From IMG/VR virus record IMGVR_UViG_3300004463_000226, positions 170,336 to 234,335 of that record: DNA of 64,000 nt. One strand, given 5' to 3'. A model generated the notes under the pieces. It had not been told where the DNA came from and did not search any database. It saw only the letters and a list, made by a program, of their open reading frames with translations. A program made the position numbers and the translations under genes. How positions within the stretch are numbered: position 1 is the first letter of the stretch; each line of letters opens with the position of its first letter. This document shows positions 1,402 to 23,924 of this stretch, in pieces.

Positions 1402-1432
1402 TTTCCTTCACCTGCCCTAGTATATATGTTTT

Positions 1433-1444
1433 TATACAATTGTT
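1433..1444 (-). promoter_or_regulatory. AACA-N6-TA promoter (AR9 non-virion RNAP type)
   Basis: Seen: plus TA-TACAAT-TGTT = minus AACA-ATTGTA-TA, 32 nt upstream of the portal-like start. Confidence 0.7.
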
Positions 1445-1461
1445 CAGGTAGCGGAAAACTA

Positions 1462-1492
1462 CAAAAAAAATAGAGAGCTATCAGCTCTCTAT
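1462..1492 (-). terminator. Intrinsic terminator
   Basis: Seen: ATAGAGAGCT-ATC-AGCTCTCTAT hairpin with A-tract on plus (U-tract on minus), downstream of 1501..1833. Confidence 0.75.
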
Positions 1493-1500
1493 TCACTTTG

Positions 1501-1833
1501 TCAAATGTATATAGTTTCTTCAACAACTAGATCATCGTCATCATCACGCAAGTATTGTGATGGATTTTCAAAGAACTTCTTCTTGAACTCTTTAACTTCA
1601 GCATAGTTCTTAAAGAATAATTCCTTAACAGGTTTAAAGAAATGATGATGATAGTTAAACCTATGACGACATATCTTAAATGTAACTGCTCCGTATACAT
1701 GAAATCCATGGTCTGGGTGATTATAAGCATTGAATCCACCATTTTTACCTGGAACCAATGGGTAGAATTCTCCTATTTTAAACTTACCCTCTATAGGTAA
1801 ATCAATACATTGACCAATCTCAACTTTAATCAT
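1501..1833 (-). CDS. Hypothetical protein
   Basis: Seen: 110-aa ORF with GGAGGG RBS, followed by a terminator. Confidence 0.75.
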   Translation of the reverse strand: MIKVEIGQCIDLPIEGKFKIGEFYPLVPGKNGGFNAYNHPDHGFHVYGAVTFKICRHRFNYHHHFFKPVKELFFKNYAEVKEFKKKFFENPSQYLRDDDDDLVVEETIYI

Positions 1834-1851
1834 TTATATCCCTCCTTTTAA

Positions 1852-2271
1852 TTACATGAATCTTCTATCGAATTCAAATCTTAGCTTTTGTCCTGTGTTA
1901 TTCTCAGGATGAACTTCTACATTCTCAAAGAATCTACTAGCGAACCGAGAATATTTCTTTCCATCTTTTAAACTTTCATATGATATGCGTGTCATCTGGG
2001 TCTCTTCATCAGTTTGTTTATCATAAACCAGATATTCATCACCTTCTTTATAGTGACGGTATATACCATATCTAACCTCAGGTTCTGGAAGTTCATATGT
2101 TTCACCAATGAACTCACTAAGTTTACGATGTAAGTTCAATACATCGTGTCTTTCATTTAGCATTAAAGCATAAACCATGTTACCACTAATAGGATCTCTA
2201 TCAAGAATATTGGCTCCACATTCAGAATCCTTACTATTTCTCATAATTTTAATCTCTTTCATTGTCATCAT
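1852..2271 (-). CDS. Hypothetical protein
   Basis: Seen: 139-aa ORF, AAGGAG RBS, overlaps upstream stop (ATGA). Confidence 0.75.
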   Translation of the reverse strand: MMTMKEIKIMRNSKDSECGANILDRDPISGNMVYALMLNERHDVLNLHRKLSEFIGETYELPEPEVRYGIYRHYKEGDEYLVYDKQTDEETQMTRISYESLKDGKKYSRFASRFFENVEVHPENNTGQKLRFEFDRRFM

Positions 2272-2561
2272 TCTCCTTTAAAATAATTATCAATTAATGT
2301 TTTAACCTCTGGGAATAACTCACAAAACTCATCAACAGTAAGTCTATCTTTTAATAATGAAATACTTGCATTCAACTCTACTTCTACTGAAACACCTTCT
2401 ACACCAGATATCTTTAACTCATCTTTCTTAAATTTCTCACTCTGAAAATGTTTAGCCTCTTCCATAGAAGTGACAACATGTCTTTCAGTACTTTCCCAAT
2501 CATCACCATACGTTGTCACGTATATAACATGAACTTCTTTCATTTTAGTCATAATTATCAA
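2268..2561 (-). CDS. Hypothetical protein
   Basis: Seen: 97-aa ORF in a coupled operon. Confidence 0.7.
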   Translation of the reverse strand: MIIMTKMKEVHVIYVTTYGDDWESTERHVVTSMEEAKHFQSEKFKKDELKISGVEGVSVEVELNASISLLKDRLTVDEFCELFPEVKTLIDNYFKGE

Positions 2562-2944
2562 TCCCTTAATGTTATTGGATAAAACTTATCTGGAACTACT
2601 TGTGGTTTAGGTAAAGGAGACAGATAAACTCTATAAGCTGTCTCTTCACCAACTGAAAAAACATCCCTTCCCATAGAACCTAAACATTGAAAGTGTTTAT
2701 CAAAAGCAGTATCCCCAGATATATAAAATACTGGTTTATTGTATATAACTCTTCTTTCATGAAGAATATACTCAGCTGTACAGTTTTCTCTAGGAATTTC
2801 AACATTAAATTTCTCTCTAATATTAGAAATAGCCCTCAAGACAACTTCAGCTTCTCTAATCTTTATATGAGGATCTTGTCTGTTAAGATATTCTTGATAA
2901 CCGTACATATTATCCTCCTTAGAATTTAATACATGTATATACAT
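2558..2944 (-). CDS. Hypothetical protein
   Basis: Seen: 128-aa ORF; start may be MYGYQE (AAGGAGG upstream). Confidence 0.7.
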   Translation of the reverse strand: MYIHVLNSKEDNMYGYQEYLNRQDPHIKIREAEVVLRAISNIREKFNVEIPRENCTAEYILHERRVIYNKPVFYISGDTAFDKHFQCLGSMGRDVFSVGEETAYRVYLSPLPKPQVVPDKFYPITLRD

Positions 2945-3569
2945 GAAAATTTGTTACGTCATCCTTAGTAATAGATATCATGGTTTCAAATAGATTAGGG
3001 TCATCTATATCCAAGATTGTTACACTCATAGGTAAACCAACTTTAATATGTGGAAATAATGCCTTTGTTAATCTAACACGTTTATCGCCTTCACCAAATG
3101 TAAGTATTTCGTTGTTGATCAACTTCTGGATATCTTCGTCAGTCAATAATTTTTCCGACTTCTTAGTGATACGGTCTACGATAACTCTATATGTATCTTT
3201 AAACGCATCAGTCATTTTAACATATCTACCAATAGGAAAATCTATCATATCTCCTGAGATAAATATACCATTATCATTAAATTTTAGATACTTGATAATC
3301 TTCTTGTTATCTCTAATGGTAACAAATACATCTTGAGAATTTAGCATCAGAGCATAACCTTCTGGTATACTAAATAATTTGAGAAGGTCATCTATCTGAT
3401 TAGTATATGAGAAATGTAATCCCATCTCCATAGCTAAACCATTATCATCTGTGAATATAACACCATTACGAACAACAAAGTAGCGAAGAAAAGACTTCTT
3501 CACTACTTGATTGATTGTATTTAGAACTTTAAGTTGTTTACTAACAACAGGTATTAATTGTTGCTCCAT
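2919..3569 (-). CDS. Hypothetical protein translationally coupled to DNA polymerase gene
   Basis: Seen: 216 aa, GGAGG RBS, TAATG stop/start overlap with the polymerase ORF. Confidence 0.8.
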   Translation of the reverse strand: MEQQLIPVVSKQLKVLNTINQVVKKSFLRYFVVRNGVIFTDDNGLAMEMGLHFSYTNQIDDLLKLFSIPEGYALMLNSQDVFVTIRDNKKIIKYLKFNDNGIFISGDMIDFPIGRYVKMTDAFKDTYRVIVDRITKKSEKLLTDEDIQKLINNEILTFGEGDKRVRLTKALFPHIKVGLPMSVTILDIDDPNLFETMISITKDDVTNFHVYTCIKF

Positions 3570-5395
3570 TACATTACCTCCCCAAGGTCAATAATAAGTG
3601 GTTCGGCAAACCATTTATTAACATCTTCTTTACTTAATACTACACGCTTACGTTTGTTCATCTTGAACTTATTACGAAGCATATCGTTAAGTTCAACAAC
3701 ATTTGGCATTCCAAACCACTTAGTTGCCATGTTAGCTACATTGCCTGTAAGTAGGTTATCAACGAAGTCTTTACCAGCGTCTTCAACTTTACCTTTCTTA
3801 TCAGCCACAGCATTTTTCATAGCTTCTTGGATATTTCCACCAATGATTAGTTTCCCTACCATACAGTTTGGAGCAATGTTGAATGCAATAATGATATGAG
3901 GATACATTGCTGAGAAGTCCATGTCAACGACATTATCAAAGATATACATACTTGGATTACCGAATACAGGTATACCCATGAAGTCGTTTAACTTTGGATC
4001 TGCTACTAATGCACCATCAAACTTTTCATCTTCATCATCTTCCTCATTATCCGCTTGATAATCTAGTCCATAGTCTAGATTGATGTTGTTACCAATGATT
4101 AAACCTTGCTTATAATACTCAATATAAGCTCGGTTCTTTAAGAAGACAGTCTGCTTAAATATTTTGTGATACACTGTTGCATTTGAATAAGCACGTTGAT
4201 ATACGTTATCAATATCAGATGTCTTTCTTTCAATTCCTAACTGTAGAAGAACGTCTTTTATATTGTACATGACGAACTTCTTATAGTCTTTATAAGGCAA
4301 TGTCTGGATATTAGCATCTTCACTATAGTCCAGCTTTTCATCACCAATCTCTTTCTTTGCTACTGCATTTAAGGCATAGGAACGTAGTTCTCCGCCACCT
4401 TTACGTAAACCCGCATAGAGTAACATTTGGTCTAGATATGCTGTATAAGAAGAAATCATAAAGTAATCTGATTTATTCTCAACTTTAAAGTTCCTAGAGT
4501 CTTTTTTATAAAATAAGGACTTAACTTTAAAATCCTTATGGCACATGATGTTAACAGGATCTAATCCTAAAGCTTTAATCCGTGCAATAATGTACGGAAT
4601 ATCGAACGCCATGTTCCAGATCATTATAAAGTCACGTTTCAGAGTATTGATCAATTTGAACATGTCTCTTATTAAATCGGGTTCATCATCATACATATAG
4701 AATCTATATTCGAGTGTACCATATGTTTCATCAAAGGCTTCATGTAATTCTTCAATGAACTCATCTATAGTATCTTCAAATTCTTGAATCTGTGGATTAT
4801 TAGGATTACGTAATAAGAACGTATAAGATACCATATCCTCTTCATCCACAATTGTAACTGCATTAATAGGACATTCACCATCTTTAGGGAAACCTTCAAT
4901 ACCTATAGAATCGACCTCTATATCTAGGTACTGCTTAGTTATAGGTTTCTCCTTATCATTATGATTGTGTAAGAACCATTGTATTCGATACCAGTTATCG
5001 ATATCATAATCTGAGCCGAAGACATTCTTATACTTATGAATGTTACTTATAGCTCTAAAGTTTTTACTCTGTTTCATCTTATTGATGAATTGCACATAGT
5101 TAGGTCCTGCTTGATCTGCTATATAGTACGGTAAATTTCTAAATGTGTACTTATGCATCTCAGCATTTTCAATTTCGATAAATGTGCGGTTATACTTATT
5201 ATTGATTGCATTTTCTTTTGCAAAATAGAATTCCATCTCAGGTGATTCGATTGTTTCTAAGTGCTTTTCCCCTGTCCTGAGATCTTTATATATAATATCT
5301 AGGAAATCTTTATAACCTGTGCCCTTGTTAGGTCTATGATAAATTGTATTCACAAGCATCAGATTTTCCTTATCTAAGTGTGGTAAGATTCTCAC
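3569..5395 (-). CDS. Family B DNA polymerase, N-terminal subunit (3'-5' exonuclease + motif A) of a split enzyme
   Basis: Seen: ExoI YLDIEVD, ExoII WNMAFDIPYI, ExoIII YNIKDV, motif A DMDFSAMYPHII; no motif B/C before the stop. Known: phiKZ-like phages encode a split PolB. Confidence 0.88.
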   Translation of the reverse strand: MRILPHLDKENLMLVNTIYHRPNKGTGYKDFLDIIYKDLRTGEKHLETIESPEMEFYFAKENAINNKYNRTFIEIENAEMHKYTFRNLPYYIADQAGPNYVQFINKMKQSKNFRAISNIHKYKNVFGSDYDIDNWYRIQWFLHNHNDKEKPITKQYLDIEVDSIGIEGFPKDGECPINAVTIVDEEDMVSYTFLLRNPNNPQIQEFEDTIDEFIEELHEAFDETYGTLEYRFYMYDDEPDLIRDMFKLINTLKRDFIMIWNMAFDIPYIIARIKALGLDPVNIMCHKDFKVKSLFYKKDSRNFKVENKSDYFMISSYTAYLDQMLLYAGLRKGGGELRSYALNAVAKKEIGDEKLDYSEDANIQTLPYKDYKKFVMYNIKDVLLQLGIERKTSDIDNVYQRAYSNATVYHKIFKQTVFLKNRAYIEYYKQGLIIGNNINLDYGLDYQADNEEDDEDEKFDGALVADPKLNDFMGIPVFGNPSMYIFDNVVDMDFSAMYPHIIIAFNIAPNCMVGKLIIGGNIQEAMKNAVADKKGKVEDAGKDFVDNLLTGNVANMATKWFGMPNVVELNDMLRNKFKMNKRKRVVLSKEDVNKWFAEPLIIDLGEVM

Positions 5396-5541: not shown

Positions 5542-6687
5542 TTGGGTAGAATGACTATGTATGTAAACATTGATCTTCCTATCGAACGAGGGAGTTTGAT
5601 TAGTGAGATCAAATCTCTTCCTAAGATTACTGCTCCACCTAAAAAGAAGAAAGAAATATTCGATGAAGGTGAACCGTTGTTATTAACAGCGGTTGGTAAG
5701 AAAGGGAAGAAAGATAAAGGTAAGAAGAAGAAAAAAAATCAAATGGGTGAAGGTCTCAGCTTCATGGGTCTTAATGATGCTGATGTTACTACTGAGGATA
5801 CGTATGAAGAATATGATGAATCAGATGACAAACTCATTGATATTGAAGCTCTTCTGAATCGTGATGACGAAGAGGATGAGGTCGGAGGAATCATTGATGA
5901 ACAGAAGCGTAGTTACGAGAAACGTAAAAAGGATGAGAATCCTTTTAAGAAAGAATTCGCTGAAGAACTAACTCTCTTATATGATTTACTTGATGATTTA
6001 AATAAGTTTAATAAGGAACTTGACAAGAAGTATAAGACTATGGAAAGTAGTAAAGTTCGTGGAGTTAGTAAGTATACTAATGACATGATTATCAATATAC
6101 TTAATGCTAAGACTAGCAAACTTCAAGTTATCAAGGAGATTAACAGCCTTAAGAAAGTTATTGCTGACCTTAAGATTAAGATGGATGGTAAGAAAGGTGG
6201 GGCTGAAGGTGGTGTTGAAAGCACTGATGCATTGGCTACTAAGTATTTCCAAAACATCCTTAAGTTCGGTCGTAACAATTTCGTTAAGGAGTTTGGTAAT
6301 GATGACAATGATGGTGATGCTATCACTGATTTAGTTGCTCGAATTGAGCAGAATAAAATGGGATATAGTCCAGATGAAGATGAAAGTTTTCATGATCTAA
6401 TCCAAGAAAGATTAGAGAGCGAAGATAACCCGTTCCGTTCAGAAGCAGGATCTAAATATATCCAGTATGAAAACCTCGGTGTAAAGATTCAAATAAAAAA
6501 ATGTATTGATAATGGTGAATGGGAGTTTGTTGCTGTTGACCGTGACAATATGGAAGTACATGGATATCCTTTACCTCGCAAACGTGATGTTGGTAAAGTA
6601 AAATTCAATGATGGCTATGCTACTGATGAAAGGGGACGTAGTTATAAAGTAATTGAGTTTTATCTACCAGATGATTACGAAGATTAA
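5542..6687 (+). CDS. Hypothetical highly charged protein (Lys-rich then acidic N-terminus, coiled coil)
   Basis: Seen: 381 aa, GAGAGGAG RBS, AACA-type promoter, downstream terminator. Confidence 0.8.
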   Translation: MGRMTMYVNIDLPIERGSLISEIKSLPKITAPPKKKKEIFDEGEPLLLTAVGKKGKKDKGKKKKKNQMGEGLSFMGLNDADVTTEDTYEEYDESDDKLIDIEALLNRDDEEDEVGGIIDEQKRSYEKRKKDENPFKKEFAEELTLLYDLLDDLNKFNKELDKKYKTMESSKVRGVSKYTNDMIINILNAKTSKLQVIKEINSLKKVIADLKIKMDGKKGGAEGGVESTDALATKYFQNILKFGRNNFVKEFGNDDNDGDAITDLVARIEQNKMGYSPDEDESFHDLIQERLESEDNPFRSEAGSKYIQYENLGVKIQIKKCIDNGEWEFVAVDRDNMEVHGYPLPRKRDVGKVKFNDGYATDERGRSYKVIEFYLPDDYED

Positions 6688-6694
6688 TATAAAA

Positions 6695-6728
6695 AAATAG
6701 ATACCTGCGATTTAGCAGGTATCTATTT
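6695..6728. terminator. Bidirectional intrinsic terminator
   Basis: Seen: AAATAGATACCTGC-GATTTA-GCAGGTATCTATTT between convergent genes. Confidence 0.8.
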
Positions 6729-6729
6729 C

Positions 6730-7143
6730 TTATTTCGTTGCAAACTCATTAGATATCTTTTGAAAAGGTTCTGTAAATTCTTCACGCATCTTTTTTCTAG
6801 ATGCTTCTTTTATAGTAAGGATATTTTCCTTACTATATTTTTCAATCTTCTCATAATACATTATATTTAACTCTACAATTTCATTACTTAATTCATTAAG
6901 TAATTGAAGTATCTGCGCTGATGTTTCTGCTTCTTCTAATAGCTGTATAATACTGAGTATCGAACTTGTAAAAGTTGAGTCACCGATCGGGTCGTCACTA
7001 CCAATAAATTCCCTTAGACGTGCACTCATTTCTAAGAATCTAGGGAATCTTTCTTTAATTTCATTGGGTGAATATTTCAGAATAATAATACCCTTTTCAG
7101 CTAAATGTGGTTCTAATACCTCTATCAATTCATCCATATTCAT
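6730..7143 (-). CDS. Hypothetical helical protein, possible paralog of 7167..7613
   Basis: Seen: 137 aa; IKERFPRF resembles IRQMFPMF in the neighbour. Confidence 0.75.
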   Translation of the reverse strand: MNMDELIEVLEPHLAEKGIIILKYSPNEIKERFPRFLEMSARLREFIGSDDPIGDSTFTSSILSIIQLLEEAETSAQILQLLNELSNEIVELNIMYYEKIEKYSKENILTIKEASRKKMREEFTEPFQKISNEFATK

Positions 7144-7166
7144 ATTAACAGCTCCCTTAAATATAT

Positions 7167-7613
7167 TTATCTTTTAAAACTTTTAAATACGCTTTCAGCA
7201 ATGATATCAATAGCAGCATGACATTTTAAAAACTCACCATGTATTTCAACCTTTGTTTTATCCGTAGCCTCAGACGATAATCCTTCTGCTTTAGACATGT
7301 ATTCACCAATAGCATCAATATATGTTGATTGTAGGCATTTATATATTTTGCTAAGCTCACGATGATTTCTTACGTTCTGACAAGCTCGCATTGTATTTAC
7401 TACCACCAAAGGAATATTAAAGTTATAATCATCAGGAACAAGTTCTTCCCTAGGATCAAGTATATTCTGTATAGCCATAAATCTATCATTCAATGCAGCA
7501 AACATTGGAAACATCTGTCTGATATGAATATTTGTTAAAGGTATAATAGCCTTTCCATATTTCACTCTCATTTGCTCAAACAGTAATTCCATCGCATAAG
7601 TCTCTTTATTCAT
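7167..7613 (-). CDS. Hypothetical helical protein
   Basis: Seen: 148 aa, GAGAGG RBS, TATATTAT promoter at 7660-7667. Confidence 0.8.
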   Translation of the reverse strand: MNKETYAMELLFEQMRVKYGKAIIPLTNIHIRQMFPMFAALNDRFMAIQNILDPREELVPDDYNFNIPLVVVNTMRACQNVRNHRELSKIYKCLQSTYIDAIGEYMSKAEGLSSEATDKTKVEIHGEFLKCHAAIDIIAESVFKSFKR

Positions 7614-7659
7614 TTTTTTACCTCTCCCTTATTATTGATTATTTATATTACTCGATATT

Positions 7660-7667
7660 ATAATATA
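7660..7667 (-). promoter_or_regulatory. TATATTAT promoter
   Basis: Seen: plus ATAATATA upstream of 7613. Confidence 0.65.
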
Positions 7668-7690
7668 TAATTTTTGATATTAAAAATACG

Positions 7691-7724
7691 AAAAAAATAA
7701 CTAGGACCGAAGTCCTAGTTTATT
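7691..7724 (-). terminator. Intrinsic terminator
   Basis: Seen: ACTAGGAC-CGAA-GTCCTAGT hairpin with A-tract on plus. Confidence 0.75.
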
Positions 7725-8271
7725 AATAATCTAACGTACGTAATGAAGAACTCTTTGGTCTCTTAGGAGGTTTATTATTGATAATTTTATGCGCCCTAAG
7801 AGAGTCTGCATTAGAAACACTACCCCATTCAATTCTTATATGTCTTCCGAAGAATTGTCTTAAATGCATTCCAATATGGAAGTCATTTTCATATCTGTGC
7901 GGGTAGAAATTATCATATACAACTTCTTTAACTCCAGCCTGATTCAACTCTTTCATACAATCAGGACAAGGATAGTGAGTAACATATGCCATAGCCCCTT
8001 CTACTGATATACCGAGTTTTGCACACATAAGCAGTGCATTCTTTTCAGCATGGATAGTTCTTTTACATCCAATACGTCCATTTTCTTCAACTTCTAAATG
8101 TCCTATCTCATCACAGTGTGCAGCTCCCGATATACTTCCATTATAACCTTCAGCGATAATTCTGTTATTCTTTACAAATACACATCCGACATGTAGCCTG
8201 TCACAGGTCGATCTTTCTGATAGCAGATGAGCATTAGCCATATAATACTCATCAAATGTAGGTCTAGTCAT
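7723..8271 (-). CDS. dCMP deaminase (ComEB-like, cytidine deaminase superfamily)
   Basis: Seen: RSTC, GYNG, HAEKNA and PCPDC zinc motifs. Confidence 0.92.
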   Translation of the reverse strand: MTRPTFDEYYMANAHLLSERSTCDRLHVGCVFVKNNRIIAEGYNGSISGAAHCDEIGHLEVEENGRIGCKRTIHAEKNALLMCAKLGISVEGAMAYVTHYPCPDCMKELNQAGVKEVVYDNFYPHRYENDFHIGMHLRQFFGRHIRIEWGSVSNADSLRAHKIINNKPPKRPKSSSLRTLDY

Positions 8272-13257: not shown

Positions 13258-13959
13258 CTAGATAGCTTTTTTCTTACGAGAAACCTTATTAATAATTTTA
13301 ATTAATTCTTTCTTTGACCTGACATCAATCAACATACCCGAATCTTTTTTAATGGTAATGCGTAAGAACTGTCCTATTAATACAGCCAATTCATCACCAA
13401 GTTTATCAAAATATCTCATCGCTAATTCTAGACAATCGGATTCAGTTTCATAATCACCCATTATCAATTTACCATTAACATACCTAGCATATGTATGGAA
13501 GTTTCCTTCATTGTAAAGATCAATATGATATAACTTCTGAACACATAACACTTCAATGGTTTTTGAAAGTATCGGTCTAGTTACATCTATAAAACCATTG
13601 TTTTCATACATTTTTATTATTTGTGAAATGTATATGTGAAGGCTTTCTGCCTCTAAATATTCTATTACAGTCGATCCTCTCTTAGCGGCTGCCTGATAAG
13701 TTATAAAGGTACAATTAGTTGGTCTTGGCGATGATGCTGTTTTTAATACCTCTATAGGAATCCGTGTATCAATAAGTTCTGTACTTAATGTTCTACAATG
13801 GTCATTTATCTTCATAGCTACAACCTCTATGAAAGTTCTATAATCTTCTTTAATTTGCTTGTATTGTGATACCATGAAATGGTTTCTCCCCTCACATACA
13901 TGATTATTATTGATTAAAAAGATATAATAGGGAAAGTCCCTATTATATCCAGTCGTCAT
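13258..13959 (-). CDS. Hypothetical protein
   Basis: Seen: 233 aa, overlaps the end of the RNAP beta-N gene. Confidence 0.75.
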   Translation of the reverse strand: MTTGYNRDFPYYIFLINNNHVCEGRNHFMVSQYKQIKEDYRTFIEVVAMKINDHCRTLSTELIDTRIPIEVLKTASSPRPTNCTFITYQAAAKRGSTVIEYLEAESLHIYISQIIKMYENNGFIDVTRPILSKTIEVLCVQKLYHIDLYNEGNFHTYARYVNGKLIMGDYETESDCLELAMRYFDKLGDELAVLIGQFLRITIKKDSGMLIDVRSKKELIKIINKVSRKKKAI

Positions 13960-15622
13960 CTCCGTTCATATTTAGCCTCACATACATCTTACTTGTGTCT
14001 TCAATCTCCCTTTGATGTAATGTCATGCCTGTCATGACATTTCTCATCTTAGCTTCCATGTTAAACATATCCGAGATATTATTACATCCCGCATATACAT
14101 CAACAATCATTTTATCTTTATTATCATTCTTATAATACTCCATAGCCTCACGTTGCATTTCAAAGACACTATCCTCTGGTTCAAATGAATTATCGAAGTA
14201 TAGACCGTCTGTTTTAGCAAATGGAGTTATTACCCCAGATGAACCTGGGTCTGATGTACCACAAACGTTTATATCAATTAGTCCGATATAAGATGGGTGT
14301 ATTCCCCGATACTTTACCGAAATATTGTTATCATTCTTCCCGCCTAGCGCGTTTGGTCCTTTAAGAGTAAATCTATACTTACTGTAGAAGTCCATATCAT
14401 TGATTTTGTCATCAAATCTTAATAATCCAGATTTGTATAGCTGTTCCATGAGAACCATTCCTGGAAACTTAAAGATTTCTTTGACTTTATCAATTGTGAC
14501 TTTATTACCTAAAGCAATAATACGATTTACCCTCTGACTAAACTCTTTTGTCAGAAGAGAAGCAATGTATTCGTTACATCTTAGACGCTTATTAGTAAGG
14601 TCTAGATTATCTTTCTTTCTCAACTCATTGTAGTTCTGAATCATCCAACGGACAACTGAGTACATGTTCTTTTTATTAGGTTCATGTAACTTCAGAATCT
14701 TCTTAGTTGTTTCATCCAGCATTCTATCAAAGAATGTTAATGTGTTGAGACCTTTCTCATAATAGTTATATGCATTGGTAGCATTCAAACTCCCGATTCG
14801 TTCTATCCAATACGTTCTATCTTCCAATAAGTCAAAAGATAAACGATTGGTAACGATGCTCAGGATCATAAAAGCTAACGACTGCACATACGAGTATTTA
14901 CTAAAGAAATACTTGTTAACCTCTAACATGATTTTACTGCTAATAGGGAAGTAGATATTGTTATCTTTATCCCTTTCCTCAGAAACAAATCTCATTGTTG
15001 TGTTAACTTCGAAATATTCAAGAGTCTTCTTAACTCCAATCTTAGCAAAGTAGAATAGGAGAATATCTACAGGCTTCTTGAATATCATAATCATATATGC
15101 TGGAGCTGTATGTAACACTCCAGTTGTATCTTTAAATTCCTTAACATTTCTCTTGATAGAAACTGGCATTAAGGATTTAAGAGTTAAGTTCTGTCTTGTT
15201 GTATAAGTGGAAGCATCAACTAGCTGATATAACAAGAAATACTTCTTACCTTTGATTGTATAATAACCGTTTTCATCTGGTACAGGTATAAGTAATTTCT
15301 TTTCAATATTGGCTTTCTCACCTTTACAGTTTAGTCGGAACTTTAATCTCAGTTCTGCATACCGACTATCTTGCAGATACATGTACTTAATATCACTTTT
15401 CTTTTTAGTTTTACGTCGAGTTGTTATATAGTGATTGAGATCTATTTCTTTCTCATCATCAATATAATCATATCCAGTGAACTCAACGTACTTTAGAACC
15501 TCTAAAGATTTACAACTTGCGACGATATGTTCAATCAAATCATCGTCATAGTCTCGATTCATGAGACCAAAGTTCAAACGGTTTTCGTTGGGATTTAAAT
15601 AGTCACCCAGAAACTCTCGCAT
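13943..15622 (-). CDS. rpoB: Multisubunit RNA polymerase beta subunit, N-terminal piece (probably non-virion RNAP)
   Basis: Seen: YTIKGKKYFLLYQL and RGIHPSYIGLIDINVCGTSDPGSSGVITP, which align by eye with beta RDVHPTHYGRVCPIETPEG. Known: AR9/phiKZ RNAP beta is split. Confidence 0.85.
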   Translation of the reverse strand: MREFLGDYLNPNENRLNFGLMNRDYDDDLIEHIVASCKSLEVLKYVEFTGYDYIDDEKEIDLNHYITTRRKTKKKSDIKYMYLQDSRYAELRLKFRLNCKGEKANIEKKLLIPVPDENGYYTIKGKKYFLLYQLVDASTYTTRQNLTLKSLMPVSIKRNVKEFKDTTGVLHTAPAYMIMIFKKPVDILLFYFAKIGVKKTLEYFEVNTTMRFVSEERDKDNNIYFPISSKIMLEVNKYFFSKYSYVQSLAFMILSIVTNRLSFDLLEDRTYWIERIGSLNATNAYNYYEKGLNTLTFFDRMLDETTKKILKLHEPNKKNMYSVVRWMIQNYNELRKKDNLDLTNKRLRCNEYIASLLTKEFSQRVNRIIALGNKVTIDKVKEIFKFPGMVLMEQLYKSGLLRFDDKINDMDFYSKYRFTLKGPNALGGKNDNNISVKYRGIHPSYIGLIDINVCGTSDPGSSGVITPFAKTDGLYFDNSFEPEDSVFEMQREAMEYYKNDNKDKMIVDVYAGCNNISDMFNMEAKMRNVMTGMTLHQREIEDTSKMYVRLNMNGDDDWI

Positions 15623-15729: not shown

Positions 15730-15737
15730 ATAATATA
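15730..15737 (-). promoter_or_regulatory. TATATTAT promoter
   Basis: Seen: plus ATAATATA upstream of RNAP beta-N. Confidence 0.65.
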
Positions 15738-15746
15738 TCATCCAAT

Positions 15747-16264: not shown

Positions 16265-16313
16265 AACAATCTCCCTTAAACAAAAAAATTTAGTATTTGT
16301 AATTACAATATTT

Positions 16314-16349
16314 AAAACCCGATGATACCCACAAAGGATATCATCGGAT
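16314..16349 (-). terminator. Intrinsic terminator (near-copy of the one at 17904)
   Basis: Seen: CCGATGAT...ATCATCGG hairpin preceded by TTAAAA on plus. Confidence 0.7.
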
Positions 16350-16354
16350 ATGTA

Positions 16355-16798
16355 TTATTCCTGCTCTTTTGATTCAGCAATTGCTTCAGTGATTTCACCG
16401 ACAGCACCTAAGTTATTTACTGGCTCTTCTACTTCACGTACATTAGATTCATTCATTTCTGGTTCCTCCATATCTACTTTAGTTTTAAGATTAAATACGA
16501 TTGGTTCAATTGCTTTTAACTCTTGGCTTCTAATTTGCTGCCACATTTTTTCTGTAATACGAACAGCTGTTATAACATCTTCACCTTTACCTTTAGTGCG
16601 TTTAAACTCAATTGAATCACCAGTGTTTTTGATAGCTGTCTGAATAAATGCTAGTGCTATAGTCGCAATTGCTTCTGGGTGACTGATTAGAATATTATGC
16701 TTTTCTTCTAGAAACTTAGTAGCCTCTACACTGATATCGTAGATTAATTTTTCTCCCTGTAGAACCTCATTAAGTTTAGCTGCATATTGATTTGACAT
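16355..16798 (-). CDS. HU-like family paralog 3 (divergent)
   Basis: Seen: ATKFLEEKHNILISHPEAIATIALAFI matches 17955..18302 AAAYLEAEHNIIFSHANAIPTFAYAFL; C-terminus shared with 16850..17266. Confidence 0.7.
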   Translation of the reverse strand: MSNQYAAKLNEVLQGEKLIYDISVEATKFLEEKHNILISHPEAIATIALAFIQTAIKNTGDSIEFKRTKGKGEDVITAVRITEKMWQQIRSQELKAIEPIVFNLKTKVDMEEPEMNESNVREVEEPVNNLGAVGEITEAIAESKEQE

Positions 16799-16906
16799 TT
16801 TAATTTCCTCCGAATATAAGTAGAATTTTATTTTTTTGATTTGTATTAATTACTCTTGCTCTTTTGCGTTAGAGATTGCTTCAGTGATTTCACCGACAGC
16901 ACCTAA
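16380..16906. repeat. Identical 32-bp direct repeat at 16380-16411 and 16875-16906
   Basis: Seen: ATTGCTTCAGTGATTTCACCGACAGCACCTAA in both adjacent genes (encodes LGAVGEITEAI). Confidence 0.95.
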
Positions 16907-17266
16907 ATTAGATACTTCTTCTTCAGCCTTAGGTTGATTACCTAATAGATCGAATACGATTGGATCAAGCATTGTTGGTTCTTTCTTAATGAGCTGCTCA
17001 CGAATTTCTTTGGACATGAATACTGCTGAAATTGTATCTTCAGGATTACTTCCATCAAGATCAGAATCCTGTTCGCGGCGGAACTCAATTGAATCATCAT
17101 CATTCTTAAGAACAGCTTCCATAAAACCTATAATCAATGTAGGTAATGCCTGATGTTGACTAACGGTTATACCGTATTTTTCTTCTAATATCTTAACAGC
17201 ATCTTTGCTGTATTTTTCAAGCTCCTCAATTCCTTGAGTAACGTTTACTAATTTAACTTCTGTCAT
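16850..17266 (-). CDS. HU-like family paralog 2 (start revised to MTEVKL)
   Basis: Seen: GGAGG RBS before ATG 17266; AVKILEEKYGITVSQHQALPTLIIGFM similar to the neighbours. Confidence 0.7.
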   Translation of the reverse strand: MTEVKLVNVTQGIEELEKYSKDAVKILEEKYGITVSQHQALPTLIIGFMEAVLKNDDDSIEFRREQDSDLDGSNPEDTISAVFMSKEIREQLIKKEPTMLDPIVFDLLGNQPKAEEEVSNLGAVGEITEAISNAKEQE

Positions 17267-17295
17267 TTTAATTTCCTCCAATAGATATAATTTTT

Positions 17296-17880
17296 TTATT
17301 TTGATAGTGAATCCAAGATATCCCAATTTTTATAGTACTCAAAGAATTTATTAGTCGTAGCAGCTTTAAGTGAAAGAGTTTGTAACTCACTCTCATCAAT
17401 GATGTTTGACGGGATAATCCATTGTCCCCATCTATCATTGTCAATACCTACGAAGATTATAACGTCACAAATATTATTGTATATAGGTCTATATCTTCCA
17501 TTTTCTAATCTAATTCTATTTTCTGATACTTTATTAAAACTTCTAGCTGGATTTGTAAGGATAAATTTAAATGTACCATCTCTACCTTTTGTTGCGGTCA
17601 TAACTTTTACTTTAACTGTATCATTTAACAATATATCTATAGGCGAAAGCTTGTTTTCATTTTTAAGATTCTTTACTCCATATCCCCTGTAGTCTAATAA
17701 CTTTACAACCAAAGGTAATATTTTTTCATGTAAAGTTTCTTTTCCTCGTATACCGAATTTTCTTCTTCTATGTGTAATGGTGCTTCTAGAAACACTATAC
17801 ATATCAGCTATCTCTTGATCAGACATATTTTTAATAGTATATAGCTCGATCAATTTCCCCTCTGATAGCAATACAATCAC
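17296..17880 (-). CDS. HTH + PD-(D/E)xK-like nuclease-fold protein, possibly degenerate
   Basis: Seen: N-terminal HTH SDQEIADMYSVSRSTITHRRRKFGI. Inferred: DILLNDTVKVKVMT and CDVIIFVG...WIIPS resemble PD-(D/E)xK endonucleases. Confidence 0.5.
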   Translation of the reverse strand: MIVLLSEGKLIELYTIKNMSDQEIADMYSVSRSTITHRRRKFGIRGKETLHEKILPLVVKLLDYRGYGVKNLKNENKLSPIDILLNDTVKVKVMTATKGRDGTFKFILTNPARSFNKVSENRIRLENGRYRPIYNNICDVIIFVGIDNDRWGQWIIPSNIIDESELQTLSLKAATTNKFFEYYKNWDILDSLSK

Positions 17881-17903
17881 TACTTTCTTATTTTTGAATT
17901 ATT

Positions 17904-17935
17904 AAAACCGATGATGCCATTTCGACATCATCGGA
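17904..17935 (-). terminator. Intrinsic terminator
   Basis: Seen: CCGATGATG-CCATTTCGA-CATCATCGG. Confidence 0.75.
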
Positions 17936-17954
17936 TCATAGACGTTGTTAGATA

Positions 17955-18302
17955 TTACTCTTCAGTGTCGTCGTCGTTCTTAACCAGCAGCTTGAACTCT
18001 TGACCTGGAATAGCATATGGAGTATAGTTGCCTTCTTTTTCAGCCTCATCATTCTCGCGGTAAGATACACCAAGATCAAGTAGCTGCATGATGTTTAATG
18101 AATAATCAGTACCAGCCGCTTTGTTTTGGTTGATATGTTCAATAGCCTGGCGCAGGAACGCATAAGCAAATGTAGGAATTGCATTTGCATGACTGAAGAT
18201 AATATTATGTTCTGCTTCAAGGTAAGCCGCAGCTGCCTCAGCGATTTTTAAGATTTCTTTTTCATTCTCACGGATCTCGATTAATTTAACTTGTTTTGAC
18301 AT
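17955..18302 (-). CDS. HU/IHF-like DNA-binding protein (family paralog 1)
   Basis: Seen: helical N-half, then LNIMQLLDLGVSYRE and PYAIPGQEFKLLVK. Inferred: resembles HU ...VQLIGFGNFEVRER...VPAFKPGKALKDAVK. Confidence 0.55.
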   Translation of the reverse strand: MSKQVKLIEIRENEKEILKIAEAAAAYLEAEHNIIFSHANAIPTFAYAFLRQAIEHINQNKAAGTDYSLNIMQLLDLGVSYRENDEAEKEGNYTPYAIPGQEFKLLVKNDDDTEE

Positions 18303-18349
18303 TTTAGTTTCCTCCTAGAATTGGGTTTTTATTTTTGATTAATCTTCCT

Positions 18350-18361
18350 CAAATAAATGTT
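18350..18361 (-). promoter_or_regulatory. AACA-N6-TG promoter
   Basis: Seen: plus CA-AATAAA-TGTT. Confidence 0.5.
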
Positions 18362-18428
18362 ACCTTGGTAATATTTTTTTATTATAAATCTCCTCTCCCC
18401 AAGTATATTATTTATCTGATTCACTTAA

Positions 18429-18436
18429 ATAATATA
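18429..18436 (-). promoter_or_regulatory. TATATTAT promoter
   Basis: Seen: plus ATAATATA upstream of the HU-like gene. Confidence 0.65.
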
Positions 18437-18509
18437 TAACTAAAATTGGGGTTGATTTTTTTATGTAATACTACCTATACTAAATAGTTGTAATGCTAAT
18501 TAAATTTAA

Positions 18510-18803
18510 TTACATTCCCATGTCACCTTTACTTACTTGTCTTATTGATTCATGTCCACATGATTCACAAGCTTCTGTCGGTTCTTCATGTAACTCATCA
18601 CACTTATCGCATAACCATATATAGTCATACTCAGTATCTTCATCGGGATCAGACATTATTGTGTCTGAGAATATTGTTGGGAGTTGTTCACTGATATATG
18701 TACTGACTGAATTAACCACCTCCTTTCGTTGTTCATTATTAAGGTGTTGACCTTTAGTTTCTAGATAAGAATTGAGTTCGCTCATTAAGAATTTTTTTAA
18801 CAT
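18510..18803 (-). CDS. Hypothetical protein with C-terminal zinc ribbon
   Basis: Seen: CDKC...CESC. Confidence 0.75.
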   Translation of the reverse strand: MLKKFLMSELNSYLETKGQHLNNEQRKEVVNSVSTYISEQLPTIFSDTIMSDPDEDTEYDYIWLCDKCDELHEEPTEACESCGHESIRQVSKGDMGM

Positions 18804-18805
18804 GT

Positions 18806-19144
18806 TTATTCATCCTCTTTAACCAATTCATTATTTGAAAAAGCTGTTCTTCTTACAGATAATCTTTCCATCGTTGGTTCTTTGGTACGATACACTCCTG
18901 TATTGGTAACAATGTATATGAATGCTTCACCCTCACGGTGGCGTGTTTCAAGCTGATCTAGTCTAAGCCCATGATTTATTGCATTCAATAACTCCCTAAC
19001 CTCACCATTTAATCTAAACATGTCAATACTACCATCAACAATTGAATCATTCCATTTGTCTCTTAAACGCTTCAATCCGAAGCGGATCATACTATCCTCT
19101 AATCTAAAATTATTCATACGCTGTTCTCTTGATTTTTGGTCCAT
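18806..19144 (-). CDS. Hypothetical protein
   Basis: Seen: 112 aa, GGGGAA RBS. Confidence 0.75.
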   Translation of the reverse strand: MDQKSREQRMNNFRLEDSMIRFGLKRLRDKWNDSIVDGSIDMFRLNGEVRELLNAINHGLRLDQLETRHREGEAFIYIVTNTGVYRTKEPTMERLSVRRTAFSNNELVKEDE

Positions 19145-19170
19145 TATCCAATTCCCCCGTGTATATAGTC

Positions 19171-19515
19171 TTATTTATTTGATGAGATATTAATCTCGAT
19201 CTCCAGTATTTTAGCAAACACTACAAATGTTTTAAACGGTAAATCGGAACGAGTAACTTTACCTAGAATACCTCGTCGTACAGTTTGAATATTTCTATCA
19301 TACTTATACTTTATTGATTTCTTATATACAGCAACAGCATTATTCCAGGCATAATCAGTAGCCTTAGGAAAATGCTGAAAGTATCTTTCTCTAAGCATTT
19401 CTCTAGAATGTTCTTCATTAATATCAATCTGCAATTCAGCCATTCTCTCCTCAATTATATTACTAAGAGGAGCATCACTTTCTAATACATTTTTAAGATC
19501 AAGTACACTATTCAT
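19171..19515 (-). CDS. Hypothetical protein, possible HTH-like C-terminus
   Basis: Seen: 114 aa, AGGAGG RBS. Confidence 0.7.
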   Translation of the reverse strand: MNSVLDLKNVLESDAPLSNIIEERMAELQIDINEEHSREMLRERYFQHFPKATDYAWNNAVAVYKKSIKYKYDRNIQTVRRGILGKVTRSDLPFKTFVVFAKILEIEINISSNK

Positions 19516-19538
19516 TATTTTTCCTCCTGTAATATTAT

Positions 19539-20171
19539 TTATTCAAACTGTCCAATAGCATTTCTATTTCTTTCCTTAAAATATTTTGACATTTTTTCAC
19601 TCACAACTTTATTTTTTCTTTCGTGTATTTTTATTGTCCAATCTCCTGTAGGATACAAAAATTCTAACATGTTTCCTATTTTACAATCAAATCTAGTATT
19701 AACAACTCTTGCAAATTTTGTATTAGCTATCTTATCATAGGTTAAAAATACGAGATCCTCATATCTGTAATTAAGATGTTCATGTAAGAACCAGTGTAAC
19801 GCTTCTCTAATATTTTCATCATCATCCCAATATCCAACAGGTACATGAAATTCCCAAGGTTTAAAACCATGTTCTGGAAAGCAAGTATTTACTATATCAT
19901 ACGTACTTTTACCTCGTAATAACCTAGCATATGCACCTTGTAATTTATAGTCAAATAGGAATGTTAATCCATACACATCAATTATTTTTTCCCTGTCATA
20001 TTTAAGTTCTTGATTGATAAGCCATCTGAAACATCGTTTAAAATTATCAAAACCTCCATTAGCAGGCATCCACGTTCCACGTGGAAAAGATTCTCTTCGT
20101 CCTTTCAAAATATCTGAATAAATTTCTTCTATACTTTGAACCTCATTGACAGACTTACCCATTATTTTCAT
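19539..20171 (-). CDS. Hypothetical protein resembling the DUF4046 family
   Basis: Seen: IYSDILKGRRESFPRGTW and FKPWEF...GYW repeats. Inferred: family assignment from memory of the motif. Confidence 0.5.
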   Translation of the reverse strand: MKIMGKSVNEVQSIEEIYSDILKGRRESFPRGTWMPANGGFDNFKRCFRWLINQELKYDREKIIDVYGLTFLFDYKLQGAYARLLRGKSTYDIVNTCFPEHGFKPWEFHVPVGYWDDDENIREALHWFLHEHLNYRYEDLVFLTYDKIANTKFARVVNTRFDCKIGNMLEFLYPTGDWTIKIHERKNKVVSEKMSKYFKERNRNAIGQFE

Positions 20172-20619
20172 CCTTTACTGGTATCCATGAATCATCATAT
20201 TCAACACCGTCAGTATCATCAATAAATGTAAATGAGCATTCGAGATCATACTTACGTAAATTTCCAATTAGATATGGTAAATCATTAGTTCCAACAATTA
20301 TTTCATCTGTATTAGGATCATAAGAAAATGCATAATTATCTCCTATCAATCCCGATGCTAATCGTCTTATATCTTCAAATAGTGGACATTTGACTTTAAT
20401 ATTATGAAATGGAAACATATAATCTTCAGGTATATTATCCTTTATCCATCTATAAACAAATCCTTTTACTTTAAAATCATTCCATCCCCATTGAAGAGAA
20501 CTGACTTGTATATGGGTAGGTATAGATTTCTCCATTGCAACTATCTGTTTTGCATGGGGTTCATATCCATGAGCTCTGTAAAAACATTCTGTTAAAGTTT
20601 CATGTATTGGTATTATCAT
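20155..20619 (-). CDS. Hypothetical protein (start revised to MIIPIH)
   Basis: Seen: AAGGAG RBS upstream of ATG 20619. Confidence 0.65.
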   Translation of the reverse strand: MIIPIHETLTECFYRAHGYEPHAKQIVAMEKSIPTHIQVSSLQWGWNDFKVKGFVYRWIKDNIPEDYMFPFHNIKVKCPLFEDIRRLASGLIGDNYAFSYDPNTDEIIVGTNDLPYLIGNLRKYDLECSFTFIDDTDGVEYDDSWIPVKDENNG

Positions 20620-21208
20620 TGTTTCTATCTCCTTTTGGAATTGGTATAGTGATTCCATCAATGTCTGGTTTTCCTGTTGGACCTCCCCATTCAACTACTC
20701 TAATATCTGGATTATTGAGAAGGATTCTTATTTCCCTTTCAGTAAAACCATATACTGATAAGGCTGATGGATCGAAATCAATAATAGGCTTTTGTGTCTT
20801 TAATGCTGTCGTGAGAGTATCACTTTCAATAATTGCAAACTTCGGAAGCTTTTCTCCAAGTTGCCTTATTAGAGCAGTTCTTTCCATATCTTCAAAAGAT
20901 TCACCAAATAAAAGAACTCCTTTTGCAGATACTCCTGGTCTAGCATACATGGTTTCGATACCATCATTCTTAATACCTACATCAAATACATCAAGGAAGT
21001 CTAATTCAACAGCTTCATGATTTACATCCTCCTTATATTTATTATGCCACTCATGTACTTTCTTTAGTCCTTCTTCAGCAAAAGTTCTAAAAATGTCTAT
21101 GATATCATCATGTGTTACTTTTATTCCTTTACCTTCTAAAACTTTACGGGTTTCCTCAGCAATTTCAATCATTTGTTCTGGGTTAACTCCTAGTCTACGC
21201 ACTGTCAT
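20600..21208 (-). CDS. Protein with N-terminal HU-like domain (family paralog 4) and extra C-terminal domain
   Basis: Seen: LDFLDVFDVGIKND and MYARPGVSAKGVL parallel LNIMQLLDLGVSYR and PYAIPGQEFKLLV of 17955..18302. Confidence 0.55.
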   Translation of the reverse strand: MTVRRLGVNPEQMIEIAEETRKVLEGKGIKVTHDDIIDIFRTFAEEGLKKVHEWHNKYKEDVNHEAVELDFLDVFDVGIKNDGIETMYARPGVSAKGVLLFGESFEDMERTALIRQLGEKLPKFAIIESDTLTTALKTQKPIIDFDPSALSVYGFTEREIRILLNNPDIRVVEWGGPTGKPDIDGITIPIPKGDRNNDNTNT

Positions 21209-23880: not shown

Positions 23881-23888
23881 ATAATATA
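23881..23888 (-). promoter_or_regulatory. TATATTAT promoter
   Basis: Seen: plus ATAATATA upstream of ligA. Confidence 0.65.
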
Positions 23889-23924
23889 TAATCAAAAAAA
23901 ATAAACCGTGTGTAGATACACGGT

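Follow-up and report, generated by a model that had tools for sequence, protein, structure and literature searches.

The stretch of DNA analysed here (the window, 64,000 nucleotides) comprises bases 170,336-234,335 of the 234,335-bp IMG/VR virus record IMGVR_UViG_3300004463_000226, which has direct terminal repeats. The GC content of the window is about 33%, and the majority of its genes are found on the minus strand. Among these are four small genes, here named A, B, C, and D, which an initial annotation had singled out as a family of HU-like proteins; all four open reading frames (ORFs) are indeed present on the minus strand (Table 1). The 559-amino-acid (aa) product of another gene, at 13943-15622, displays 33% identity to the N-terminal half of the β subunit of the non-virion RNA polymerase (nvRNAP) of the Bacillus phage AR9/PBS1, and is more weakly similar also to proteins of Staphylococcus S6-like phages, Yersinia phiR1-37, and Listeria LPJP1. 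On the basis of this similarity the phage, which is uncultured, is placed with the relatives of AR9-type jumbo phages. Rhizosphere metagenomes contain near-identical DNA, and a diverged strain is represented in a soil metagenome.

A, B, C, and D are paralogues of one phage protein family. A hidden Markov model (HMM) made from A and 27 metagenomic homologues was run unfiltered against the 1710 ORFs of at least 40 aa in the 234,335-bp genome, and it matched A (E = 1e-59), C (2e-11), B (5e-7), and D (2.4e-4), the next ORF having an E-value of 1.9. A 98-sequence family profile was further aligned using hhalign. It matched D with a probability of 96.6% (E = 5e-10) over D residues 2-100, which include both helices, the strands, and the Pro-Gly turn, and B and C together with 97.7%, the latter match being confident only over the first ~58 residues that form the two N-terminal helices. 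The homology proposed among the four proteins is thus borne out by profile alignments, as is the proposed split between A and D, which retain the strand half, and B and C, in which only the helical stalk is kept and is followed by a new C-half and a shared tail. B and C are 39% identical to each other over their full length (E = 5e-29). The acidity that had been noted for all four, unlike HU, was also found, the isoelectric points (pI) being 4.69 for A, 4.36 for B, 4.80 for C, and 4.91 for D, while those of E. coli HU/IHF are 9.3-9.6. In addition, A, B, and C have in common a near-identical ribosome-binding site and start context, GGAGGAAAxTAAAATG (repeat family D2).

The family is characterised by two motifs, EKEGN at the tip of the hairpin and PGQEFKLLVK.D..TEE towards the C-terminus. 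A carries both; they are absent from B, C, and D, and the hairpin of D is even shorter than that of the family. A word search yielded no relatives beyond this phage for B, C, or D, nor did a pattern scan of IMG/VR for B and C, and these three genes appear to be lineage-specific copies. In a PHROGs search the tails of B and C matched only the 23-residue profile phrog_4157 (E ~0.002), which is without known function.

Table 1. Positions in the window of the four family genes and of the repeats, promoter-like elements, and hairpins associated with them.
Feature	Position	Strand	Description
Gene A	17955..18302	-	115 aa, pI 4.7; conserved single-domain member; predicted two-helix stalk, three strands, and C-terminal helix with acidic end
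Gene B	16850..17266	-	138 aa, pI 4.4; N-terminal, putatively dimerising helices only, then new C-half, acidic linker, and shared tail
Gene C	16355..16798	-	147 aa, pI 4.8; sister gene to B, sharing its architecture and tail
Gene D	20600..21208	-	202 aa, pI 4.9; residues 2-100 a complete, divergent copy of the domain, then a C-terminal extension of ~100 aa
Exact 32-bp repeat, copy 1	16380..16411	-	Tail of C; encodes LGAVGEITEAI
Exact 32-bp repeat, copy 2	16875..16906	-	Tail of B
Early (virion RNA polymerase type) promoter-like element	18422..18441	-	AGTTATATATTAT, six bases, G; has the extended downstream consensus of this phage; 120 nt before the ATG of A
Late-promoter consensus match (putative)	18350..18361	-	AACA-N6-TG; 48 nt before the ATG of A
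Terminator-like hairpin after A	17908..17934	-	12-bp stem and T run, directly 3' of A
Hairpin after C	16307..16359	-	Stem type CCGATGAT...ATCATCGG and T run; inverted repeat I4

The 27 homologues of A are 47-99% identical to it and 110-121 aa long, and they are encoded on contigs of 210-270 kb. Their C-terminal half is near-invariant, with EKEGN(Y/F)xP(Y/F) followed by PGQEFKLLVK.D..TE(E). An exhaustive profile search at E <= 1e-3 extended the family to at least 291 cluster representatives (clusters at 50% identity), all of them metagenomic. The best 150 of these 291 representatives include 73 single-domain proteins and 66 proteins of 195-285 aa, and all but one of the latter contain two copies of the domain, i.e., they are tandem fusions. 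Among the listed members 147 are shorter than 300 aa, and all of these are acidic, with pI values of 4.05-5.42. The family was not found in the reference collections searched: PHROGs gave no match for A or nine of its relatives, no Pfam family scored above threshold for the four proteins or for 28 single and 65 tandem members, and no match was found in the DNA of 50,697 GenBank phage records when the region, A, and a fused relative were used as queries in DNA and tblastn searches. A search of BFVD with the model of a fused relative (see below) returned only two uncharacterised Myoviridae proteins from the gut, which have the same architecture.

The A gene lies between the genes for an NAD-ligase and the nvRNAP β subunit, and the order ligase, A or its fused form, nvRNAP β holds for both single and fused forms of the family. 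The fused genes are found in the contexts ParA, unknown gene, ligase, fusion, or ligase, small genes, fusion, nvRNAP β. Since this is the locus of A, the fused genes are taken to be its orthologue in a covalently dimerised form. The two halves of the fusions differ when it comes to the motifs they retain. Of the 65 first halves, 57 contain the tip motif, [ED]K.G[NT], which none of the 65 second halves has, while the C-terminal motif, searched for as a strict pattern, is found in none of the first halves and in 27 of the 65 second halves. This asymmetry indicates that one tip and one C-terminal element per dimer suffice, and it suggests that the two subunits contribute jointly to one composite site. 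Other arrangements of the domain occur in related phages. A 182-aa paralogue with two copies of the stalk only is encoded directly upstream of the A gene in two of the related loci (L016/L017, 5374-5919, plus strand), and a 240-aa paralogue with one stalk copy (E = 2.6e-12) lies upstream of ParA in another (L128, 214-966, plus strand).

The structure of the A monomer was predicted with AlphaFold2 (AF2) using 28 sequences. The model has confident helices at residues 14-32 and 39-60, and a C-half with a predicted local distance difference test (pLDDT) score below 50, as would be expected if the protein reached its fold only in an intertwined dimer. A much better model was obtained for P0032, a tandem relative of 226 aa that is the best match of the A profile; with 65 fused members aligned, its pLDDT was 90.6 and its predicted TM-score (pTM) 0.88. 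In this prediction each repeat consists of a two-helix stalk, a three-stranded sheet with a β-hairpin, and a C-terminal helix, that is, the order helix-helix-strand-strand-strand-helix (H-H-E-E-E-H). It is this order of elements that defines HU/IHF (PMC5499826).

The structural matches of the fused model include single-chain IHF, Hbb, pA104R of African swine fever virus (ASFV), BVU_2165, and tandem HU domains of the CCDC81 type. The first four matches are microtubule inner proteins, and inner proteins of the CCDC81 type and single-chain IHF are found among the six best. To our knowledge, solved chains with two HU-type units are rare. The paper on the 8v3l deposit models BMIP1 and CCDC81B of Tetrahymena, the CCDC81 domain of the latter spanning residues 38-218 (PMC10705406), and judging from chain length and range 8v3l_A would be CCDC81B. 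In the 8g2z paper IJ34 is described as a CCDC81 homologue (PMC10105768). For 8snb_1K and 9e2g_2N the assignment to CCDC81 was not confirmed by sequence; a profile of bacterial HU-CCDC81 run against the PDB matched canonical HU/IHF only. Residues 129-226 of the fused model, in its second repeat, were in addition found to resemble a viral PF00216 cluster in the ESM Atlas, with a TM-score of 0.59 over 90 aligned residues (3.0 Å).

A is also predicted to form a homodimer. The median ipSAE interface score obtained using ESMFold2 was 0.58 (0.58, 0.83, and 0.58 in the individual runs), compared to 0.00 for the best control, with a contact agreement between runs of at least 48% and a partner pLDDT of at least 54. 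Of the proteins solved as homo-pairs, 20 of 30 attained the mark used for such predictions, as did one of 23 solved as single chains; since our own alignment was used for A, these counts apply here only approximately. The tightest contacts are predicted between residues 20, 24, 27, and 28 of helix 1 and residues 45-56 of helix 2', and helix 2 crosses helix 2' at residues 45-49. These contacts correspond, in the model, to the stalk arrangement of HU. A stalk dimer is thus indicated both by prediction and by a Rosetta-stone argument from the natural fusions. The stalk residues of the predicted interface are kept in C, where I, A, Y/F, L, F/I, A, A, F, and A are found at the matching positions, and this conservation makes heterodimers sterically plausible. 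As B, C, and D keep the stalk interface, they would probably form homo- or heterodimers, possibly also with A, and in heterodimers the asymmetry seen in the fusions would be reproduced.

HU/IHF is the classical fold of DNA-bending proteins in bacteria. The phage family shares with its canonical members, including AR9 g103, LPJP1_176, and SPO1 TF1, the topology and the dimerisation via a two-helix stalk that are predicted for it, a PG turn before the last helix, a weak but collinear alignment, and, for AR9 and LPJP1, the slot upstream of nvRNAP β. In a comparison of the A profile with PDB sequences only IHF-beta was matched (E = 0.5 and 1.4), collinearly, and hhalign against three E. coli HU/IHF sequences gave 32%. 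All the weak alignments to HU/IHF are in fact collinear, with a gap of 7-9 residues at the HU arm and with PGQEF placed on the (P/S)GK turn.

The gene context points in the same direction. AR9 g103 (L028, 5835-6131, minus strand) lies within the stretch between the ligase and nvRNAP β genes and encodes a basic canonical HU with a pI of 9.4; it is found on the opposite strand, and the gene g104, encoding the uracil-DNA-glycosylase inhibitor Ugi, is located between g103 and nvRNAP β. LPJP1_176 (L132, 6306-6599, minus strand) is likewise a basic canonical HU (pI 9.75) encoded on the opposite strand, here immediately upstream of nvRNAP β; it is annotated only as hypothetical, but an HU HMM matches it with E = 7e-8. 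When the family HMM was run against 404 ORFs of five related loci, AR9 g103 was obtained as a weak match (E = 0.0022) that is collinear over profile positions 11-100, the next ORF having an E-value of 1. An hhalign comparison of A2 with the single AR9 g103 sequence was not significant. The synteny with the HU genes of AR9 and LPJP1, together with the collinear HMM match to AR9 g103, suggests common descent with HU, and it is probable but unproven that the family has diverged from a phage HU.

The differences from canonical HU/IHF are nevertheless considerable. The canonical proteins are basic (pI 9.3-9.8), while the phage family has pI values of 4-5.4; its arm is 7-9 residues shorter and lacks the Arg and Pro residues used for DNA binding, and it falls below all HU profile thresholds, so that membership of HU/IHF by sequence (PF00216 and its clan) was not found. 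Neither were the extended arms, the intercalating proline, or the basic character of the protein: there is a gap at the arm, the tip reads ENDEAEKEG, and the pI range is that given above. The family is best described as a virus-borne variant of the HU/IHF fold that is acidic and short-armed and that includes natural dimers in a single chain.

The closest parallel is offered by the CCDC81 clade of the HU superfamily, in which two tandem HU domains make up a dimer in one chain, the tip of the hairpin is truncated, and basic residues have been lost (PMC5499826). It was predicted that HU-CCDC81 proteins have lost DNA binding and bind proteins instead (Burroughs et al., 2017; PMC5499826). The phage family displays the same features, namely single domains or tandem duplications forming a one-chain dimer, a truncated hairpin tip, and the loss of basic DNA-contact residues, and for both groups protein binding would be expected rather than DNA binding. 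However, none of the 93 members scanned matched the Pfam families HU-CCDC81_bac_1/2 or euk_1/2, and the phage family differs from the clade by its longer stalk helices, by its own invariant motifs (EKEGN and PGQEFKLLVK.D..TEE), by its acidic C-terminus, and by being confined to contigs of jumbo phages. The same three changes, arm shortening, loss of basic residues, and tandem fusion, are thus seen in the two groups without detectable sequence similarity, and they may have arisen independently in viruses. The fusions differ also from the single-chain IHF scIHF2 (PDB 2iif), an engineered and circularly connected construct that uses long arms to bind DNA; in the phage fusions, which are natural, the repeats follow one another head to tail and their hairpins are short and acidic.

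We consider it fairly probable that the four genes encode a phage-specific family of HU/IHF architecture, the stalk dimer of which most likely binds a basic partner instead of wrapping DNA. A has a net charge of -10 per chain and about -20 per dimer, and with such a charge and without the arms HU-style DNA wrapping is unlikely. The most invariant residues of the family are found in the hairpin stub, ENDEAEKEG, and in the C-terminal helix with its acidic end, which match the DNA-facing parts of HU with the charge reversed. The former DNA-binding face would then bind a basic partner, either a DNA-binding protein or some other basic surface, and the protein would act as an adaptor or a DNA mimic; this step parallels the argument made for HU-CCDC81. 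A is the conserved member in the slot between ligase and nvRNAP β, where AR9 and LPJP1 carry a basic HU; dimers of B and C would present their shared acidic C-terminal peptide. Known DNA mimics such as T7 Ocr, PBS Ugi, and the HU inhibitor Gp46 of SPO1 are likewise small, strongly acidic, early phage proteins that form dimers or compact units. Their folds are unrelated to that of the phage family, and the likeness, being one of charge and context, concerns a possible mode of action only. In a bolder version, which is conceivable though rather doubtful, the HU of the phage has itself been turned into an 'anti-DNA' HU in one lineage of jumbo phages that encode RNA polymerases: charge reversal and arm loss would have made its former DNA-binding saddle a DNA mimic or decoy for a basic DNA-binding protein of host or phage, and subunit exchange of A with B, C, or D, or gene fusion, would have given asymmetric dimers with one active site.

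Several observations weigh against an acidic family of HU architecture that binds a basic partner. The C-half of the model of A itself is poor, and its fold is read from the predicted structure of the fused relative P0032. The ESM Atlas models of C and D are of low confidence, and a look-alike search with them gave no lead. PF00216 finds nothing in the phage genome, and Pfam scans of the 28 single and 65 tandem members gave one weak match, to HU-HIG (E = 0.024). An hhalign comparison of 98 family members with 83 HU/IHF sequences gave 2%, and the fused alignment 0.9%; against 11 bacterial HU-CCDC81 proteins, fetched with PF18175, it gave 0.2%, while HU against HU-CCDC81, used as a positive control, gave 95.4%. 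Foldseek listed no HU chain at E <= 1e-3; the search with the A monomer was uninformative, and the fused model had no PDB match within this limit. The locus was found in no RNA run. Finally, local basic patches could bind nucleic acid despite the overall acidity, and K104 and K108 are invariant.

The low hhalign values obtained with broad profiles while the control works, the lack of a Pfam HU-clan match above threshold, and the Foldseek result are what would be seen if the likeness to HU were convergent or superficial, and the family an unrelated small α/β dimer that is not HU-like in an evolutionary sense. This is, however, unlikely. The order of the secondary-structure elements is identical, the weak HU/IHF alignments are all collinear and place PGQEF on the PGK/SGK turn of HU, the only PDB sequences matched are IHF-beta, and most structural matches belong to the HU superfamily (CCDC81 domains, single-chain IHF, Hbb, pA104R, and BVU_2165). 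Synteny with canonical phage HU genes points the same way. The term HU-like used in the initial annotation thus holds for the fold and the stalk dimer as predicted by the P0032 model and the A homodimer, while sequence homology to HU was not significant; similarly, of the structural checks suggested there, the AF2 topology turned out HU-like and no Foldseek match to HU appeared at E <= 1e-3. Neither of the two outcomes named there as refuting the idea, a predicted fold unlike HU or a lack of profile support for homology among the four, was seen.

The shared tail of B and C had been described as identical and encoded by an identical 32-bp repeat. The repeat is exact, and its two copies are the only ones in the whole genome; independent public de Bruijn contigs break exactly at it. 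The tails, on the other hand, are identical in 16 of their last 19 residues and in 49 of 57 nucleotides, compared to 42 of 113 residues and 189 of 339 nucleotides in the rest of the two genes. Elsewhere in the genome no ORF contains the tail motif. Identical residues share their codon in 12 of 16 cases in the tail and in 23 of 41 outside it, and ten consecutive identical codons are found in the tail, for which a naive binomial calculation against the background rate gives ~0.003. It had further been proposed that B and C result from a recent duplication or conversion. A recent duplication is unlikely given that they are only 39-44% identical overall, which leaves at most a short conversion tract, or local constraint. 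The likeliest account combines selection on the peptide with a short conversion tract.

The run of ten identical codons would also fit a repeat that acts at the nucleotide level, as a recombination hotspot, an RNA element, or the target of a homing endonuclease, and not through selection on the tail of the protein; an ORF resembling homing endonucleases adjoins B, and B is rearranged in a soil variant. Still, over the whole 19-residue tail the same-codon rate is not clearly above that of the background, the conservation of 16 of 19 residues together with codon bias accounts for much of the identity, and the repeat is found nowhere else in the genome. A nucleotide-level element is for these reasons improbable, and peptide selection with a short conversion tract is preferred.

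The family might alternatively be a true nucleoid or architectural protein, an analogue of HU or TF1 that binds DNA despite its acidic charge and is perhaps suited to modified phage DNA. Such a function would agree with the predicted HU-like fold and dimer, with the weak collinear profile match to AR9 g103, with the invariant lysines of the C-terminal helix, and with a position syntenic to that of the canonical HU genes in AR9 and LPJP1. No canonical HU was found elsewhere in this phage in the PF00216 search, and its ThyA-family enzyme could make a modified pyrimidine. We nevertheless hold a nucleoid role to be quite improbable: all of the 147 listed members are acidic, A carries its ten negative net charges, the shortened hairpin has an abundance of Glu and Asp at the places taken by Arg and Pro in HU, and the same changes led Burroughs et al. 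to predict the loss of DNA binding in HU-CCDC81 (PMC5499826).

A thymidylate-synthase-family gene (PF00303, E = 2.7e-58) is located outside the window, at G000:C1:62144-63067 on the plus strand. ThyX, dUTPase, and Ugi homologues were looked for in the phage genome, and none were found. As the genome encodes a protein of the thymidylate synthase family, uracil DNA is not indicated, and the premise of uracil-containing DNA that accompanied the first description of the genes is doubtful; unlike in AR9/PBS1, thymine or a hydroxymethylated pyrimidine may be at least as likely as uracil in the virion DNA.

Ugi is a β-sheet DNA mimic (1UDI structure). That A should be such an inhibitor, an analogue of Ugi or p56 protecting uracil DNA as in AR9/PBS1, has in its favour that A is small, acidic, and probably early, that the AR9 Ugi gene lies directly upstream of nvRNAP β beside the HU gene, and that a phmmer search with AR9 g104 against all ORFs of the genome found no Ugi homologue (best E = 0.59), but with the thymidylate-synthase-family gene present, no sequence similarity between A and Ugi, and conserved motifs and a fold in A that are unlike the Ugi β-sheet mimic, it is very unlikely indeed.

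The way in which A is expressed can be judged from the signals around it. The early promoters of AR9 have the consensus AAATATATATTAT-N6-G and the late promoters AACA-N6-T(A/G), and genes having both in tandem are expressed continuously (PMC5312081). A had been described as having both promoter types, with sustained high expression as the suggested result. The early type is backed by statistics: the 9-mer core ATATATTAT occurs 18 times in the window (e.g., at 15730-15738, 18429-18437, and 23881-23889) compared to 5.4 expected, a number reached in none of 100 shuffles, and 16 of the 18 sites are on the gene strand. In the genome as a whole there are 61 such sites, many of which are followed by a conserved extension of approximately N4-GTAATCAATAATAAT. 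The promoter of the virion RNA polymerase thus seems to be conserved across this distant clade. The late-type motif, in contrast, shows no enrichment in the window, with 112 occurrences compared to 119 expected, and the match upstream of A is therefore only putative. Nor were promoters of the sigma-70 type enriched in the region (24 found, 27.5 expected).

The intrinsic-terminator-like hairpin that directly follows A indicates that the gene is likely monocistronic. The hairpin after C was passed over by the terminator scan, its loop being longer than 8, but the two hairpins have the CCGATGAT...ATCATCGG stem type in common, which suggests that a terminator module has been reused. A also has the highest GC content at third codon positions (0.36) among the surrounding genes. 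Taken together, its early-type promoter, strong ribosome-binding site, strong terminator, and third-position GC content point to A being probably expressed early and strongly.

Several other genes in the region deserve mention. Between A and B is a 194-aa ORF (17296-17880, minus strand) with an N-terminal helix-turn-helix; it strongly matches the C-terminal part of phrog_12058 (E = 6e-44) and more weakly PHROGs of HNH endonucleases, and it probably encodes a free-standing homing endonuclease. It has no counterpart at the same position in L004 and L006, the related phages that were examined in detail. A 210-aa ORF (19539-20171, minus strand) has a Pfam DUF4046 match above threshold (E = 2.4e-9), and is one of several small genes between ligase and A in this phage that are missing in the relatives examined. 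In a related phage of 240-250 kb (L004/L005) a 413-aa gene of the IS605 OrfB/TnpB type is inserted in the NAD-ligase gene (1169-4925), which is thereby split into parts of 576 and 116 aa, the 116-aa piece resembling the C-terminus of the ligase in the window. The nvRNAP β gene of the same phage is also in pieces (5559-8013; 309 and 92 aa), after which comes an HNH-like ORF of 256 aa. In the diverged strain from the soil metagenome (2024, run X10) a contig omits 108 nt of gene B, corresponding to about residues 78-113 (16927-17036), and the genes between A and D (18656-20183) are covered by no contig. The divergence of this strain is ~7% for D, ~1% for A, and ~0.3% for C.

We know of few cases outside the CCDC81 clade where the HU/IHF fold has given up DNA. 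The phage family comprises at least 291 clusters, has a fixed position beside the RNA polymerase genes of the phage, and is absent from PHROGs, Pfam, and the GenBank phages searched. Within it, A offers a concrete candidate, open to testing, for an early core function of the uncultured jumbo phages that make up this AR9-like clade. The basic HU found in AR9 and LPJP1 and the acidic HU-like proteins of the soil clade constitute a natural experiment in how a DNA-binding scaffold is repurposed. Should an 'anti-DNA' HU turn out to be the true explanation, the HU scaffold would have given rise to a new class of phage proteins that serve takeover or counter-defence and are equipped with varied docking tails.

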